DNA of 64,000 nucleotides, from the NCBI RefSeq assembly GCF_033153115.1, contig NW_026889758.1, positions 17,422,001 through 17,486,000 of the forward strand, in the 5' to 3' direction. The translations under genes were made by a program, and so were the position numbers. Positions 24,801-46,160 of this stretch are shown one piece after another. Under the pieces are notes generated by a model. The model had not been told where the DNA came from. It made no database searches and saw nothing but the letters and a program-made list of their open reading frames with translations. This DNA comes from Saccostrea echinata (Eukaryota). The number at the start of each line of letters is the position of its first letter. Position 1 is the first letter of the stretch.

Positions 24801-26377
24801 ATTTAAGAGGAAAAGTACCTATGATTGAACCATTTGTTCCTAATGCACTATATTACCGAAAAAAGACAATAAGGAGGGCAGAAATTATGGAACATAGAAA
24901 CAAATTGGCCAAAGGAGTTCCACAGACGGGGAAACGAAGTTTGTATGATATACCGAAAAGAAAGGTTGCTAGAAGTATGAAGCAGCTGAAAACTGCTAAT
25001 GCTGAGCAAGAGCTGTTAAGTCCGTCCATGAATATTGTCAGACCATTTAGTGATTACAGAGCGACGACTCGACGGGAGGTTCAACAACGACCCCGCACTG
25101 CCATAGGCCTGACAAGTTTGACATCAATGAAAGAGCGAACCAGACCAGTTTCAGAAAACAACCGAGTGTTTTTAACTGAATGCAGCAATGGTAATTCAGA
25201 GGGTGAAAGGGATAACATGATATTGAATGAAAACGATAATTTTTTAAAGCAGTTAGATAATCTTCATCGCGAAAAATATGAAAATAGGTCCAGGATTATT
25301 TGCTCTGCCACAGCAAGAGAAGAATTGATGAACGATATGCGATACTTTAACGGTAGTACAGGCGAGGTTCAGGTACCAAATGACGATGCTTATTTTGACT
25401 GGGAGACCAGTGAAGGGCACCTTAATAGGTTAGAGGATAGGATTAAAAGTTTCTGTGACAAGCTAGAAAAGACAGCAAATAACAAGGACGCACCAAGGCT
25501 TTCTCCTCTAAAGAGATTTTCCATTCAAGATGATAGAGATGTGAGTACAAACTTTTTGCAAGAACATTTATTGTACTTAATCGGGAATAAATGGGGGAAG
25601 GGGGTTGTTCCAAAATATAGATAAGTACCTGCATATGTTGAATTGTACAAAAATGATTCTGGTATATAATTGTTTGGTATGACAAACACGATTTTTTTAT
25701 TCAGTAAGAAATAAACAATTTTTAGCTCAAGTGACCTGAAAGCTCAGGGTGAACTTTTCAGATACATTTTGTCTGGCGTCCATGTGTAAACTTTTCACAA
25801 TTTTGACCTTCTCAAGAACCACTGGATGAATTTCAGCCAAACCTTGCCACAAAGTATCCTTGGGTAAAGGGGATTTAAATTTCTTCAAGTGAAGGGCGTC
25901 ACATCTTTCTAGGGGAGATAATTCAGAATAAGTGAAAATATAATGCATCTTTCAAAATCTTTTTCTCAAGAACCACTGAGCCAGAAAAGTTGAAACTTGT
26001 GTGAAAGTTCCATTACATAGTGTAAATTCAAGTTTGTTCAAATCATGACCCTCGGGGTAGGGTAGGGCCACAATAGGCATTCAAAGGTTTACATAGGAAC
26101 ATATATTTAGGCTAATGAATATGATATTTTGGAAGAAGGTTGATGTAATTCTTTTCATTTCTTACAGGAAAATAACTTTGATCTTAAAGTTCCCAAACCA
26201 GGAGGAACAGTATTCGTTCGTACAAAAATATGCAACAGTCATGAGATGTCATCGGAGGAAGACGTTCACCAGCATGTACGGAGATTTATTCTAACAAGGG
26301 AGAGTAGTGGTGTGGATCAGGTACAACTTCCGGACAGACCTAAATCGGCGTTTGCTGGTTATCAAGAAAGAAGATAA
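18814..26377 (+). CDS. Cyclic nucleotide-binding domain-containing protein (CNBD2-like)
   Basis: Exons 18814-18943, 20976-21063, 22502-22741, 23030-23157, 23735-23916, 24015-24113, 24203-24351, 24468-25540, 26168-26377 splice in frame. First cNMP domain: DVIIAQGEKGNSFFIMLTG...GKSFGEVALMSEDSVRNATVLADEETDLMVISRELF. Second domain: YGSTIVKQGDPPPGLLFIVQG, with a degenerate phosphate-binding cassette. Confidence 0.87.
25721..26100 (+). mobile_element. Truncated Helentron-like element in the last CNBD intron
   Basis: ttagctcaagtgacctgaaagctcagggtgaac...aaaccttgccacaaagtatccttgggtaaagggg; same family as the 56359 element. Confidence 0.7.
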
Positions 26378-27234: not shown

Positions 27235-27432
27235 ATTTAGAGTGATGCCATTTTTCAATTTCTTCAAAGAGAAGCTGTCCTGGACTCTCTGTTGGTCGCA
27301 TATCTGTGTGTCCTTCAAAATTAAGTAAGTTTTCTGATGTTTCTTATTTCCACCAGGCCGCTGAATTAATGCTTTAGCCGCCCCAAGGCTTTGGGATTGG
27401 GAAAACGTTGATTAAAGTTTCTGATGAAGCAG
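27235..27432 (-). pseudogene. Frameshifted PGRP last-exon relic
   Basis: The minus strand reads CFIRNFNQRFPNPKAL / AAKALIQR / FEGHTDMRPTESPGQLLFEEIEKW across frameshifts. It is homologous to [18 protein letters not shown]...[22 protein letters not shown] of the intact PGRPs. Confidence 0.8.
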
Positions 27433-31287: not shown

Positions 31288-33343
31288 TCAGTTTCCATGA
31301 TAAAAAGGCCATGTCTTTAAATCTTGGTATAGGCATTTCCCAGGACTCACTGTGTCTCTAAAATCTCTGTGACCCATCAAAATGAAATTAGTCGATATTT
31401 TGCCTTCTTTCACACCCCTGCGTATCAGATCTTTAGCAGCTCTAAGTGCTTTTTGGTTTGGAAGACGTCTGTCAAAGTTTCCAATGAAGCAAATACCTGA
31501 AAAAAGGAGATAGATCTGTTCAATGACTTTTGTTTCGGTGGAATTTTTCACAAGTTTTAATCTGATTTTCTTTAAACTTAATTTTTTTTTATTCTATACT
31601 TTTCATAAATGTTATCTTAGTAAAAAAAAAATTAAAAGCAATGGTCAGTAAAAAGAATATGAAGAAACTTTTCGTAATTATCATATAGAACATAAATAAA
31701 GGTTAAATAAAGATGTATCATATACCTATGCTGTATTTGTTGAGTCCTTTCGTGTGAGCCCCTTCCTTACCCCATCCACGGCCCTCATATACATTCCCAT
31801 CCTCTCCAATCAAGAAATTGTATCCAATATCAGACCATCCTTAAAATAAGATTGAATATGTCCATCCACTAGTTTCTAACAATTAGAAATACATGTTAAT
31901 TAAGTATGTATAAAAATTAGGTATGTCAAATCGATCAATATTTGATAATCGGTTACTCGGACGATTTTCCGATCAAGTACCTGAGTACTTGATAAAAATA
32001 TGAATACAAGGGGTTTTCTTGAGACCAGTTAAACCCTGTTAAGCCTCAACGATATTTTTGATTGGGCTTGTGTAACTTACGCCACGTTAATTACCGTATA
32101 GCCATGGGCTGTTTTTTTAAAAAAGATTTTTAATAAATAAATGTAGTTTGAAATACGAAAAAATATACAAGTAACCAAGTACCAATTTTAGTATTCGATA
32201 CTCCAACGTTCGATCGAGTACCCTTTTAACAGGGTACCAGTTGACATATTTTTTTATTAAAAAATATGTATGCAACTGTTTTCTCGATCGGTTATAACTA
32301 CGATTTTTCAAAGAAAATTCATGGGGAAAAACACCATGTTAACAAAATAAACAAGCGCTGACAGAAATCCGAATGTATATTAAATGATAAGACCACGTGA
32401 CTTCTTTAAGCTTCAGAAATATTTTTGGAATATCGAATTGACAACCAAATGAAGTTATATCGTTAGACATTTTGTAAATGTTCTTGACTGGATTTAATGC
32501 CAAGTAATCCACTGCTCCGTATGCCCTTCTGTACATAAATGCTACTTTGCGGTCTTTTATATCACAGTTCAAATCATTATCTCTTGTCCGTTAGGGATTA
32601 AGTACGACCACGTTTTTGTTCGAAAGCCACATGCGATTTGTTAACAATGTCGCTGATCATGCACAAGAGTTGCATTCTCTTACTTTTTGTAATACTTAAC
32701 AAAAATACTTTAAAATTTTTATATACATGTTTGAATTTTCATATCTTTTTAAAGAAAACCAATCTGACTTATAATTTGACGAAAGTTGAAACTTTTAATA
32801 CAGGATTATTTTTCATGAAAAATACAAAATGGTTCTTTACCATAAAAAAATCGGACCGAGCGCATTTAAGGAATGAATCTGTCTACACACCTTTGGTATA
32901 AATATGGAAGGTCTGATATGAACGCACTTCTGCTGCACACTGCTCTTCTGTAAACGCTTCCTTACTAGAGGCACTGTGTGAAATAATGACGTATTTTGGT
33001 AGGTTTTGCAGACCATCTACCTTTCCCCCTGGCTGTATTGCTCCCCATTCATTACGGTCTATAAATCTACTCGTAAACAGCTCTAAAATGTAGGTAGTAT
33101 AAAAATAATATTATCAATATGTACAATGTGTATAATCAAAAACTGAAGATCGATAATTCAATCTTTTAAAGAAGTTATTTAATAACCTGAAATATTGACT
33201 CTTTCCAAAGGATCTCTGGAATCCTTTGGCCCACAGTCATATTCCTTTGAGCCTAGTGTATGTAAAAAATCTAAAAGTTTCCGCAGTAATTTTGTGTAAA
33301 CATCTTCTTCAGGATTTATTGCAGTGATGATATTCAATGCCAT
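31288..33343 (-). CDS. PGRP copy B: non-catalytic, with the N-terminal DED-like domain largely deleted
   Basis: Exons 33343-33187, 33082-32891, 31839-31726, 31496-31288 are in frame. Product: [67 protein letters not shown]...YVIISHS...[46 protein letters not shown]...[16 protein letters not shown] exon sizes (192, 114, 209 nt) are identical to copy A. Confidence 0.88.
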
Positions 33344-33412
33344 GAATAAATGTTTCTGAAAAAAAAACCAAATACCTTCAGTGAAGGATATATATATATA
33401 TATTATATATAT

Positions 33413-33575
33413 TTAAGGAATAACTGTCTAATTTTTTGGATTCATGATGTGATCAATCGAGTGGCTTGCGTGATAATTTGCATAAACGCCGAAGGCGTTT
33501 ATGCATAAAATTATCACGCAAGCCAATCGATTGATCATCGTCATGAATCCAAAAAATCTGACAGTTATTCCTTAT
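33413..33575. repeat. About 160-bp near-perfect palindrome/hairpin (probable transposon end)
   Basis: taaggaataactgtc...gcataaacgcc-gaa-ggcgtttatgc...gacagttattcctta. Confidence 0.85.
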
Positions 33576-34309
33576 ATTTACATGCTCCTGATTCTGCAAA
33601 TTCCCGTGTTAATAGCCCCGCTTCTGTCTCTATTTGTCCCGCCCCGCACGTGATTTATTTTAATCGCGCCTATCGATGAACCAGTAGATTTATGTAGAAA
33701 TAAAGTAATTTTACAATTTGTAATTTTATCTCGGACAAAGACATTGGAAATGTAAATATTACATTTTAAACAGTGAAATATTGTGATTTATTTATTGAAT
33801 AAAAATTGATATTATCTCACAGAGTGAAAGGATACCAAAATTATATTCCGTATAGTGTAAAAGGATATCAATGTAATTAAAAAGTAATTTGCGGCCTGAA
33901 ATATGATAAAGATAATAAATAAACCATCTTGATAGAGAATAAAACTGCAAATTTCTTCCCAAATATGTTGCTAAAATCCATGTTACAATGCTTTCAATCT
34001 CACAACTGCTAAGCTATGACGTCTCAACTGCTTAACTATGACGTGCCTGCTTCTTACAATAATGTTAGTACTTTGATTTAGTAAAGCCATGTCGATCATT
34101 TGCCTAGAAGACATAAATCATATCATAAGGTGTAACTTATTCTTTTTGGTAGTGTTTTGAACAACATCTAGAGTTTGACCAGGAAGACATGGCTAGGGTA
34201 AACGGTTATCATTAAAATAATGCTAGGTACAGGTACATGTATTTTGGCTGCTTTCCAAGAAGAATTATTCTGTTTAATATATAACTCATGATAATGTTAT
34301 CGCTACCAC

Positions 34310-35929: not shown

Positions 35930-37265
35930 AACTTCAATATGCCAACAAAGGAATTGATGCGGTTAATATAAGTAATATTCTTAATCACAAAAGGGTCCAG
36001 TCTTGTATTCCACCATATTTCAAGTTAAAGACTACGCCTTGTATTTCCTACAAATATACATCGACTATTGCTTCCAAACTTTTTAATTACAAGAAACTTT
36101 ACAGGGCCTGGATATCGAATATCTGAAACATAATCCTCCATCGTGTTCATGTTCTTCTTCACCCTATAACTATAGTCCTGCTGGAAACGTTATTACTGGT
36201 GACGTAAATATAGTTGATAATGACGACCTTAGATCACTAATTTTAAAAGGTCCTAAATATAGGGAACCCCAATCCTTCAACTGGCGTCGGAATTTCATAA
36301 ATATTATGGATTCTGTAGAGGATTACGCCAGGCGATGGGCCAGACATGAAAAAGAAGACCTTAACATTTGTCAGAATGGATTAAATGTATCAGATGTATG
36401 TTAAAATCGCGCATTAAAAGATTGAGGGGCAATTTGAGAACCATTTATCCTTCTGTATTCAATAATCCAGAAGTGAAAAAAGAATTAGAAAGATTACATG
36501 ATCAGTACGTACTGGTCCCTGCTGACAAAGCAGGTAACAACATTGTCTTTGTTTGTAAGGCTCATTACATGTATATTAAATGTATTTTAGAGGAACTTGG
36601 ATTTAATTCTACAAGTGGTAATCCAACTTATACTCATAGTTCCCTTTCTAAGGAAGAAATTCTTGAAAATCATATGTCAGTTTTGAATATTTTTAATATT
36701 CCAAACAACCAAAATGAATTTGAATTACCATATCTATATTGGATTCCGAAACTTCATAAAAATCCTTACAAACAAAGATACATAGCTGGTTCCAGTAAAT
36801 GTTCAACCAAGCCTCTTTCTTTACTCCTTACTATGATATTAACCGTAGTGAAGGAGAAACTTTAAGAGTACTGTGCAATAATATATTGGAGAAGTGGTGT
36901 AAATCAGATGTGGATACTTAAAAATTCCAAGGAACTTTTGGAAAATTTAAAATCACAAGATTTTACCAAAATCAACAGCTTAAAAACTTACGACTTTTCG
37001 TCTATATACACAACCATTTCCCACGATAAATTAAAGTTCAGGCTTTTAGATATCATTGACAACTGCTTTTTCAATAAAAATGGAACTCGTAAATTTACTT
37101 ACCTTGTCATTGGTCATTTGCAAAATTATTTTGTTAAAAAAAAACATTCTTATTGTACACAGAAGTACTCTGAAGTTGACATTAAAAAGATGCTGAGTTA
37201 AGTTCTGATTGACAATATCTATGTGGTTTTTGGAGACCAGGTCTTCCAACAATCTATTGGAATTC
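35930..37265 (+). mobile_element. Degenerate Penelope-like retroelement reverse transcriptase fragment
   Basis: Broken ORFs with VLVPADKAGNNIVFVCK, YLYWIPKLHKNPYKQRYIAGSSKCSTKPLS, MWILKNSKELL, LKTYDFSSIYTTISH and VLIDNIYVVFGDQVFQQSIGI, typical of PLE-type RT. Contains stops and frameshifts. Confidence 0.82.
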
Positions 37266-37822: not shown

Positions 37823-39807
37823 TCAATTTCCATGACTAAAAGGCCATTTCTGCAAATCGTGATACAGACATTCCCCAGGACTCGCAGTATTACTAAAATC
37901 TCTGTGACCCTTCAGAATGAAATTAGTCGGTATTTTGCCTTCTTTCACACCTGTTCGAATCAGATCTTTAGCAGCTTCAAGTGCTCTCTGGTTTGGAAGA
38001 CGTCTGTCAAAGTTTCCAATAAAGCATATTCCTGATAAAAGAAGGTAGACATGGTAAAATATTATTTCAGTCACTGAATGGGATATGTACCAAGTTTACA
38101 TCATTTTTTTCCTTGAAAAATGTATTTTAAATCCTTCATAACTGTCGTCCTAATTAATATAAATATTAAAAGCAATAGTTAATAAATGGAATGGGGAGAA
38201 CTGTGCATAATTCTGATATACAAAAATAAGAATTTAAGTGTTTAGACATATATTAACAACACACCTATGCTGTATTTGTTGAGTCCTTTCGTGTGAGCCC
38301 CTTCCTTGCCCCATCCACGACCCTCGTATACATTCCCATCCTCTCCAATCAAAAAATTGTATCCAATATCAGACCATCCTTAAAATAAGAATATGCCCAT
38401 TCACTATATTCAAGATGAGTTAAGGCCGGTACACACGTTAAGATATTTGTATTATACTACGAAAGTATTATAAAATATAAATCTTACTGTGTATACCGGC
38501 CTTTAGATATTACAATGAAGCGCCTTGAAGTGGTAAAATTTTCTGTTTGAATGGAATGTTTTGAGCTTTCTTTTGAACGTTGGTTGTAACACAGTGACAC
38601 GCCTATTTCTTCAGAAAGGAAAAAAAGAGGGTATGTAGGATAGGTATTCACTAAATACAATAGCCAATCAGATTGGCAGGCTACATAAACACCGAGTGAA
38701 CACGTGTTCGACCGATATATACTAGTAGGTTGTGATAACTTCAATAAACAGAATAAATTCATAATTATGTACATATTCTTTGCAATATGTTAATTTTGCA
38801 GACACGGGTGGTCTCTAACTGTCTCTTCTAACTTCATAAAATATCCATTTCAGCAAAACTCATGTTGCTAGCCGCAGAGAGTGAGGTGCCTCATAAAGCA
38901 CTGAGACGAATATTTCTGTCTGGTTTCTACAGAAATGGGCGTGTCATAATGTAACAATAGACGTTCGATAAGAAAGATCCAAACGTACCATTAAACGATA
39001 AATTTTACCGCTTCGATGCGCTTCATTGCATTTCCTCTGAGAATTATTTTTGAGTATACTGATTTGAATTCAGTGAAGGAACGGATCTGTCTACACACCT
39101 CTGTTATAAATATGATAGGTCTGATATGAACGCACTTCCTCTGCACATTGGTGTTCTGTGAATGCGTTGATACCAGAACCGCTGTGTGATATAATGACGT
39201 ACTTAGGTAGGTTTTGTAAATCATCTACCTTTCCCCCTGGTTGTGTTGCTCCCCATTCATTACGGCCTATAATTTTGCTTGTTAATGGCTCTGGAAATTT
39301 GGATAGTATAAAATAAAATATATTATTCACAAGATATCAAATTGAAAAAACTTGAGATCCTTTTCCTTTTATCATTTAAAATAGTGCAATAACCTGAACT
39401 GTTGACTTTTTTCAAAGGTTCTCTGGAATTAAAAAAATATATACATTTTTTAAATTAGAAAATACTCAGCATGCTTCTCTTATTAAAATAAATCAAATTA
39501 TTTTTGTATCGTCAGCATAGAATAAAGTCCCCTCAATAAATTACCTCAATTCTTTAATGGTTTTCTGAGCTTCTTCGATGTATTCAATCGCTCTTTGATC
39601 ACAGTCAACGAAATATTTTAGAAGTACATCATATTTACCAGGTGACAAATACCCCTTAGCCTCAAGAATGTTAAAATCTTCGACCACATTGCCTTTTGGA
39701 TACGGAGCTTCTGTGATTTGTCCAATAAATAACCTCCATGAGTTAAGTTTAATAAAATCTAAAAGTTTCGATAGTAATTTTCTATGCACCTCTTTTACGG
39801 ACTCCAT
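37823..39807 (-). CDS. PGRP copy A: N-terminal death-effector-domain-like module plus a non-catalytic PGRP (amidase_2 fold) domain
   Basis: Exons 39807-39545, 39422-39394 (29-nt microexon), 39290-39099, 38378-38265, 38031-37823 are GT-AG and in frame, with an in-frame TAA upstream of the ATG. PGRP motifs: [66 protein letters not shown]. The N-terminal 88 aa are helical with [22 protein letters not shown]. The PGRP call is strong; the DED call is less certain. Confidence 0.88.
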
Positions 39808-40978
39808 TGTGGTAATTTAAATGTCATGATTGCATATGTTCAATTTCTTTTAGGGATTTTTCTGCAAAATAAAAGCAGATAAATACTTATCAAACAAAAC
39901 GAGAGGAATACAAATTAATTTGATGGTTTATTTCATTGATTTTTTATTCTGTCAGTTATATTTTGTGAAACAACATTTCAGATTGTGTTTTTCGAATGTA
40001 ATTTCATGTTTTCTCCTTTGGTACCATTTAGAGGAATTTATACGTAGTTGAGAGAAAAACTATTCACATATGAATAATTTTTATCTTCATCAAATAACTC
40101 ATTTCAATTTTACTCAGTTTAGTTTTTATTTTTGCCATATTAGATTTTAAGATTTTTCTATAAATGATGGCATATGAGACGTTGCAAAGACGCACTAAAT
40201 AAAGTTACAGGCTTTCTGTTGTCTTAAAATAAACTTCATATGTATATATACATGTACATAACCATAAATAGATCTAGATCCATAATAATTTTCATGAAGG
40301 AGGAACACAGAACTGCCTACACTTTTTATTGCAGAGATGTCATCTAAATCCTCATTTTGGTGGAGTTTCAGAGATACATGGTGTAATTCTTGTATTTTTC
40401 AAATTATGTTGTTTCACTGTGATTCTATTTAATGTATATCAGACTCTTCCTTGTATATCATATCATAAAGGACGTAATTTACATTATTTTCAAATCATTA
40501 ACTGACACAATTTCTAGTTTCTGTAATCCACATCCTTACATACGTGTACCAACTTATAATGACTCTTAATGATGTGCATGTATCTGATCAGTAGCTTGCA
40601 TATCACAATTAATTAAATCTTTCTGCATTAATAAAAAAAATATGACATCCTTCAAATAACTAAATTTTTAAGCATGAAATTTCAAAAGCGTAAAATTGAT
40701 TTTCATAGCGTAATGTAGTAATAAAAGTGGAAGAAATGCTCCAAAAATGAAAGGGTAGATAGGTCAGGGAACAGGGCATGTACCTCGCCAAATATTTCAG
40801 AATATGAATTGAGTTTGAAATTTTTTAAGCATTTATTAATTTCGCGCTGCATATGACTTGAACAAATTAAGCAGTTTTCAAGACAGCTTCAACGACAGAG
40901 CTCATTTGGGAAAACATTCTGTCAATCAATATTTAAAAATCTACGTCTAAACTGCATGAAGTCCTTCATTTTAATAAT

Positions 40979-46029: not shown

Positions 46030-46160
46030 NNNNNNNNNNNNNNNNNNNNNNNNNNNNNNNNNNNNNNNNNNNNNNNNNNNNNNNNNNNNNNNNNNNNNNN
46101 NNNNNNNNNNNNNNNNNNNNNNNNNNNNNNNNNNNNNNNNNNNNNNNNNNNNNNNNNNNN
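46030..46160. other. Assembly gap (N run)
   Basis: Run of n characters. Confidence 1.

Follow-up and report, generated by a model that had tools for sequence, protein, structure and literature searches.

A predicted death effector domain joined to a PGRP domain in a candidate cytosolic receptor of the oyster Saccostrea echinata

In the genome of the blacklip rock oyster Saccostrea echinata (923 Mb) we analysed a stretch of 64,000 nucleotides, G000:C9:17422001-17486000, which is called the window throughout. On its minus strand, between positions 39807 and 37823, lies a gene that we refer to as gene A and whose predicted product combines a divergent death effector domain (DED) with a peptidoglycan recognition protein (PGRP) domain. 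As judged from the sequence, gene A is a real gene and its architecture is real and apparently undescribed. The explanation that we favour as a whole, with moderate confidence, is that of a cytosolic, non-catalytic PGRP that gained a divergent DED from a bivalve subfamily as a single exon, and that would use it in the signalling mechanism outlined below. A first-pass annotation of this DNA had already suggested that gene A may encode an intracellular DED-PGRP receptor. The DED fold, the non-catalytic PGRP, the missing secretion signal and the single gene have held up well in that reading; we infer the ligand, localisation, partners and output of the protein, and consider a role in signalling plausible.

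Gene structure and the N-terminal death fold

Gene A is built from five exons, all of them with canonical AG/GT borders, whose lengths (263+29+192+114+209 = 807 nt) yield 268 codons and a TGA stop with the frame kept. The product is residue-for-residue identical to the RefSeq protein XP_061173305.1 (here P0001). Searches at full length were run with this database record, and those at exon level with the exons as they stand in the window. RefSeq thus already models the gene, under the name "peptidoglycan recognition protein 1-like", which reflects the PGRP domain only. Borders, frame and this identity all agree with the earlier statement that five exons join in frame to about 268 residues.

Exon 1 (39545..39807, on the minus strand like all that follow) contains the start codon and the whole DED-fold domain, namely residues 1-87 and two nucleotides of codon 88, in an open frame that runs into a GT donor. 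The annotated start codon at 39807 stands in a strong context, with A at -3 and G at +4. Next comes a linker exon of 29 nt (39394..39422; …EPLKKVNSS…) with AG/GT borders and a maintained frame, a homolog of which is fused into the first exon of a neighbouring gene, paralog B. The 87 N-terminal residues, predicted to fold as a DED, are in this way set before the PGRP domain by a linker of about 10 residues. The PGRP domain itself is distributed over three exons. Its first part, exon 3 (39099..39290), encodes S132-H133, where a zinc-ligand His has turned into Ser, and A140/C146, the remains of a broken C-x5-C disulfide. The core is found in exon 4 (38265..38378) with G162-W163, Y168, R182 and H190, and the C-terminal part in exon 5 (37823..38031) with H242, T248, S250 ('TASPG') and the TGA stop. 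Each of these last two exons exceeds the cut-off of Pfam Amidase_2 individually, with E-values of 1e-5 for exon 4 and 6e-6 for exon 5. The window includes 131 N at 46030-46160, beyond gene A.

According to its predicted structure, the exon 1 domain belongs to the death folds and, within them, to the DED subclass, in a divergent form. AlphaFold2, provided with an alignment of 14 rows, returned a model with a predicted local distance difference test (pLDDT) of 91.9 and a predicted template modelling score (pTM) of 0.80, in which helices span residues 4-18, 21-32, 41-50, 60-66 and 71-86. A Foldseek search with this model gave DEDs for all of the top 12 matches, at template modelling (TM) scores of 0.70-0.76 normalised to the query. 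VIA-align, which is independent of Foldseek and covered 48,161 chains, also placed DEDs in all of the first 11 ranks (Z 12.2-9.7, root-mean-square deviation (rmsd) about 2 A over 75-86 of the 87 residues). PEA-15 (Z 12.2), caspase-8, MC159, FADD and vFLIP lead this ranking; pyrin domains come in lower at Z <=9.0, followed by death domains and CARDs at <=7.3. The death-fold module proposed in the first-pass annotation has therefore received a confident model and DED-only top matches from AlphaFold2 and Foldseek, and no match from Pfam.

Relatives of the domain point in the same direction. A single-sequence phmmer search of the PDB with exon 1 produced one meaningless match (E 0.57). In the ESM Atlas, the clusters nearest to exon 1 are DEDs (0.91, 179 shared features), and an exhaustive phmmer search with exon 1 over 1.84 billion cluster representatives retrieved 11 matches at E<=1e-3. 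Two of these relatives, P0007 with tandem domains (41.6 bits) and P0011 from Mercenaria (47 bits), exceed the Pfam DED cut-off of 35.9. Three others (P0002, P0005 and P0006) match the Pfam DED below threshold, and L007, a paralog from the oyster's own genome, falls slightly short of it at 33.3 bits. When a profile of the DED-like family was compared with the PDB, the DEDs of caspase-8 came first (DED2, E 1.4e-3) and cFLIP second. A comparison by hhalign with canonical DEDs from nine exons of the S. echinata genome gave the family an E-value of 6.8e-5 and a probability of 63% over helices 3-5. The profile alignment sets L26-F27 of gene A opposite F122-L123 of caspase-8, a correspondence of alignment position only. 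Canonical DED-DED contacts make use of an exposed hydrophobic pair in helix 2, the FL motif.

The exon 1 domain is one member of a DED-like subfamily with at least 8-12 single-exon copies in the S. echinata genome (at least a dozen relatives by one count), including L002-L008 on contigs C33, C34, C32, C30, C25 and C57. Its members share the signature H..L…WK…DF..LE.KG.L.VG.YD.L…ID.RA. The relatives also occur in other fusions, once with NHL repeats (P0005) and once as a tandem DED with a trypsin-like protease (P0011, Mercenaria), as well as in small DED-only proteins of oysters (P0002, P0006 and P0009). By the relatives retrieved, the subfamily is specific to bivalves.

The PGRP domain, its ligand groove and its location in the cell

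The PGRP domain of P0001 comprises residues 98-268 and is readily identified by Pfam Amidase_2 (PF01510; 78.5 bits, E 7e-22, residues 126-253, cut-off 26). In the PDB, 24 PGRPs match the protein at E<=1e-20 (best 4.6e-46), among them PGRP-LCx, PGRP-LE and human PGLYRP1; entry 2cb3 matches at E 5e-39. Functional positions were read from an alignment, A3, that brings together T7 lysozyme (from NC_001604), P0001, catalytic PGRPs, fly PGRP-LE-like proteins and the oyster paralogs.

The catalytic positions of T7 lysozyme are H18, Y47, H123, K129 and C131, with His, His and Cys as the zinc ligands (PMC8347126). In A3 they correspond to S132 ('IISHS'), Y168, H242, T248 and S250 ('TASPG') of the oyster protein. 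Two of the three zinc ligands are thus substituted (H->S132 and C->S250), which departs from the pattern of catalytic PGRPs, and a domain with these substitutions should be non-catalytic rather than an amidase. The alignment with T7 lysozyme also shows that the substitutions had been read correctly before, as IIHH->IISH and TxCPG->TASPG. The same pattern, 'ISHT…TASPG', is seen in P0087 and P0102, two PGRP-LE-like proteins of flies. In a pairwise comparison by phmmer, H133 had first seemed to be a kept zinc ligand; this assignment is ruled out by A3 and by a one-residue gap in the Ostrea protein P0057, which together put the ligand position at S132. H133 corresponds to the second His in the 'HH' pair, a residue retained in all animal PGRPs of the comparison.

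The groove that accommodates the ligand appears well preserved, with H157, W163, Y168, R182, H190 and N195 in invariant columns of A3. A Gly-Trp pair together with an Arg equivalent to Arg254 of PGRP-LE has been tied to the recognition of diaminopimelic acid (DAP)-type peptidoglycan (PMC4309185, PMC8347126). Both elements occur in P0001, as G162-W163 and as R182 ('EGR'), and A3 thereby bears out the GW...EGR signature that the first reading had named. The PGRP domain of gene A is predicted to bind DAP-type muropeptides.

Neither a signal peptide nor a transmembrane segment was found in P0001. The Kyte-Doolittle hydropathy over 19 residues has its maximum at 0.8, the longest uncharged run within the first 45 residues is 7, and the N-terminus forms a charged amphipathic helix in place of a hydrophobic one; the earlier claim on this point is hence sustained. 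The conserved C-x5-C disulfide of PGRPs is Cys74-Cys80 in PGRP-SA (PMC8347126). In genes A and B its first Cys is replaced by Ala140 (A3). Both cysteines are absent from the fly LE-like proteins and kept in all secreted-type PGRPs of the alignment, and P0001 accordingly lacks the two marks of the secreted PGRP-S type, signal peptide and C-x5-C. The loss of the disulfide cysteine is independent of the missing signal peptide and fits a reducing, cytosolic location. Taken together, the protein is apparently cytosolic.

Ancestry of the fusion, proposed mechanism and rival explanations

A second species of the genus carries the same combination. The S. cucullata protein P0022 (280 aa) has an identical DED+PGRP architecture with a DED that is 74% identical, and in an exhaustive protein search the DED-PGRP pairing was found only in Saccostrea. 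Within the window, gene A is accompanied by the tandem paralog B (P0024, 223 aa; 31288..33343, minus strand), whose PGRP exons occupy 33082-32891, 31839-31726 and 31496-31288. Over the PGRP exons the two genes differ with a ratio of nonsynonymous to synonymous substitution rates (dN/dS) of 0.21 at dS 0.42. The first exon of paralog B is particularly informative, as it contains a remnant of helix 1 (…LLRKLLDFL…), a stretch matching the intron-1 acceptor of gene A and the homolog of exon 2. Because it keeps remnant, acceptor match and linker, paralog B can be understood as descending by deletion from an ancestor that carried the DED. That ancestor would already have had DED, linker and PGRP in one gene, so that the fusion is ancestral in the clade and the exons belong together. 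In a tree built from PGRP domains, proteins with an intact DED group in one clade (support 98/97), the DED-degenerate proteins P0024 and P0027 (S. cucullata) branch below it, and Ostrea P0057 lies outside. The S. cucullata architecture, the structure of paralog B and this tree support the earlier view that exon 1 and the PGRP exons are joined in one gene.

Paralog B, with the same PGRP and no DED, offers a natural control or represents a possible decoy. P0057 of Ostrea edulis (312 aa) is a related non-catalytic PGRP that has no signal peptide and an N-terminal HEPN_DZIP3 domain (51 bits), which makes it a second apparently cytosolic oyster PGRP with an exchanged N-terminal module. What remains of another PGRP gene's last exon is located at 27248-27431 of the window (minus strand; …GHTDMRPTESPGQLL…) with a frameshift between its halves. 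This relic looks closer to the type of Ostrea P0057, and tblastn revealed no upstream PGRP exons for it.

Possible partners of a DED are present in the genome. A FADD gene has its DED exon (70.5 bits) at C53:2658471, where the DED spans 2658471-2658719, and 2.5 kb downstream of it a Death-domain exon (43.2 bits). Two loci with tandem DEDs of the caspase-8/cFLIP type lie at C56:14677614-14678559 and C25:11792390-11793380. The FADD DED exons L010 (G000:C53:2658471) and L013 (G000:C34:444947) are 1 residue apart over 143 aa of open frame and represent haplotigs or a very recent duplication.

In the mechanism that we propose, the PGRP domain would bind muropeptides, probably DAP-type ones, once these have entered the cytosol. 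Ligand-driven clustering of the PGRP domain, as known for Drosophila PGRP-LE, would gather the DEDs, which might then nucleate homotypic assemblies with oyster FADD and/or tandem-DED caspase-8-like proteins. The outcome would be caspase activation and cell death, or Rel/NF-kB signalling, and the RHIM-IMD-FADD relay of insects would be bypassed. More tentatively, the protein might serve as a one-protein 'peptidoglycan DISC' (death-inducing signalling complex), in which cytosolic DAP-type muropeptides cluster the protein and the DED directly nucleates tandem-DED filaments of the caspase-8 type, whether FADD takes part or not. We regard this version as possible and rather doubtful. If it is true, oysters would possess a path from peptidoglycan to the activation of caspase and NF-kB that does not depend on IMD, and the protein would constitute the first known pattern-recognition receptor with a DED as its output domain.

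Several observations weigh against gene A encoding a cytosolic sensor that signals through a DED. A Pfam search with exon 1 alone returns no family at a threshold as lax as E<=10, and the domain does not reach the DED gathering score. Helix 3 of the domain is a Pro-rich loop, and for this reason DSSP counts only 5 helices. RxDL, the E/D-RxDL charge triad of helices 2 and 6, is absent, as had been remarked before; where canonical DEDs of the same genome (alignment A6) show 'I.R.DL', the subfamily has D70-x-R72-A ('ID.RA') with nearly invariant D70 and R72. A complex prediction for the gene A DED and the oyster FADD DED scored 0.00, which amounts to no answer and is evidence neither way. The residue rule that separates DAP from Lys binding has documented exceptions (PMC8347126), and the DAP specificity of gene A is therefore a prediction. 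Given that sister paralogs exist without an intact DED, the domain is dispensable in at least some copies. A missing signal peptide is no bar to release, as Drosophila PGRP-LE acts extracellularly too. At the 5' end of the gene, gene A lacks 4 nt, in a DNA alignment with paralog B, immediately past an ATG common to both, and this gap displaced the ancestral start. The ATG, at 39827, is now out of frame and opens an upstream open reading frame (ORF) of 10 codons (39795..39827, minus strand) that overlaps the annotated start at 39807. Lastly, no transcript-derived copy or fragment of the gene A protein turned up in the protein collection with exon 1 as query, a weak test because of the word filter.

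Some of these observations fit other explanations of the gene. The architecture may be real and the DED still not recruit FADD or caspase-8. It could then have a regulatory or decoy role like PEA-15, cFLIP or DEDD, or pair only within a private network of the bivalve DED-like subfamily (DED-NHL, DED-protease and DED-only proteins). Although we consider this unlikely, it is the rival that deserves most attention. The top structural match, PEA-15 at Z 12.2, is a non-apoptotic regulator, but caspase-8, FADD and vFLIP match the model at near-equal Z. The subfamily goes by its own signature (WK…DF..LE.KG.L.VG.YD.L…ID.RA) with no RxDL, whereas L26-F27 align with the hydrophobic pair of helix 2. This rival would also agree with the presence of at least 8-12 single-exon copies in the genome and with relatives in which NHL repeats or a trypsin-like protease are attached; the FADD complex prediction lent recruitment no support, yet speaks neither way.

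Clearly less probable is the reading of gene A as a young duplicate, specific to its lineage and on its way to losing function, with the fusion as an exon-shuffling by-product of a growing cluster and no role of its own. The displacement of the ancestral ATG by the 4-nt deletion and the upstream ORF over the annotated start would be expected of such a gene, as would the loss of the structural disulfide, the decay of the DED in paralog B and in S. cucullata P0027, the frameshifted PGRP exon relic close by, the lack of a transcript-derived copy in the protein collection and the restriction of the fusion to Saccostrea. However, 268 of 268 codons and every splice site are intact, an intact DED is found in two species, and the DED model reaches a pLDDT of 92 despite a shallow alignment. 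The low dN/dS of the PGRP exons (0.21 at dS 0.42), the invariant peptidoglycan-groove residues and the strong context of the new ATG (A -3, G +4) likewise argue for a maintained gene. An annotation artefact, finally, would make exon 1 a separate small DED-only gene and leave the PGRP with another first exon, possibly one coding for a signal peptide. Small DED-only proteins are indeed known in oysters (P0002, P0006 and P0009), but the frame is intact over four canonical introns and independent S. cucullata models share the architecture. In paralog B, moreover, the helix-1 remnant, the intron-1 acceptor match and the exon-2 homolog sit in one exon that is spliced to PGRP exons, and 0 members of the clade have a signal peptide. 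We consider an artefact very improbable.

The remaining features of the window concern its other genes and repeats. A nested inverted repeat at 33405-33583, composed of 43-nt arms that are 88% complementary and 30-nt arms that are 97% complementary, lies about 60-240 nt upstream of the start codon of paralog B. It looks like a hairpin of the miniature inverted-repeat transposable element (MITE) type in the promoter region. Between the two PGRP genes, at 36368-37201 on the plus strand, adjacent ORFs of 165 and 97 aa have no Pfam match; by eye the second one shows a reverse-transcriptase-like stretch (…YDFSSIYTTI…), so the pair is probably a retroelement fragment. Further away there are a BTBD17-like gene at 2744-4494 (minus strand), with BTB, BACK and BTBD17-type TRAF domains over two large ORFs, an ORF of 381 aa at 24479-25624 (plus strand) that has no Pfam match, and an ORF of 112 aa at 54522-54860 (plus strand) with an Arrestin_C match of 8e-9.

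Comparison with known systems

In function, the known protein nearest to gene A is Drosophila PGRP-LE, a non-catalytic PGRP that detects DAP-type peptidoglycan inside the cell for the IMD pathway. Neither has a signal peptide, and gene A carries the G-W and Arg positions; with the fly PGRP-LE-like proteins it shares 'ISH[ST]', 'TASPG' and the loss of the C-x5-C. Gene A and PGRP-LE differ in their N-termini: PGRP-LE employs a RHIM-like motif that leads to IMD and from there to FADD and DREDD, whereas the N-terminus of gene A is predicted to be a folded DED. Molluscs lack RHIM-bearing PGRPs and IMD, and FADD, Dredd and Relish are present (PMC9835746). For animals with PGRPs, FADD, Dredd/caspase-8 and Relish but without IMD and RHIM-PGRPs, a PGRP with its own DED would be a concrete candidate for the coupling between them.

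The DEDs of FADD, caspase-8, cFLIP/vFLIP and PEA-15 (PF01335) resemble the exon 1 domain in fold (Z 10-12, rmsd about 2 A) and at the level of sequence profiles, in which L26-F27 align with the hydrophobic pair of helix 2. In contrast to these canonical DEDs, the gene A domain is without a Pfam match, has D-x-R-A for RxDL and a loop for helix 3, and is joined to a pattern-recognition domain, not to a death domain or caspase.

The setting of such a fusion is not foreign to bivalves. Kaur et al. (2021, PMC8195603) described lineage-specific expansions of DED/Death-like adaptors in sessile marine animals, Crassostrea among them, in which a constant death-like domain is combined with variable sensor or effector domains. 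Peptidoglycan and amidase terms have 0 occurrences in that article and, judging by its main text, a DED-PGRP is unlisted among its architectures. The remark in the first-pass annotation that it knew of no described DED-PGRP agrees with the open-access literature, in which we found no description of a DED-PGRP or a death-domain PGRP in molluscs. The reach of the finding is limited, in that the fusion comes from one oyster genus and the shuffling of death-fold adaptors in bivalves is already a known theme.

A wider parallel, by analogy only, exists to AIM2 (PYD+HIN) and to NOD1/NOD2 (CARD+NACHT-LRR), which likewise link a ligand module to a death-fold adaptor. The death-fold adaptors of such sensors polymerise upon clustering, and NOD1/2 sense peptidoglycan fragments (muropeptides). 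Gene A differs from them in the subclass of its predicted death fold, a DED, in its amidase-type PGRP sensor and in having no NACHT. If the favoured explanation of gene A is true, the 'sensor + death-fold adaptor' design of AIM2, NLRPs and NOD1/2 would take in a further death-fold subclass, the DED, and a further sensor fold, that of PGRPs.

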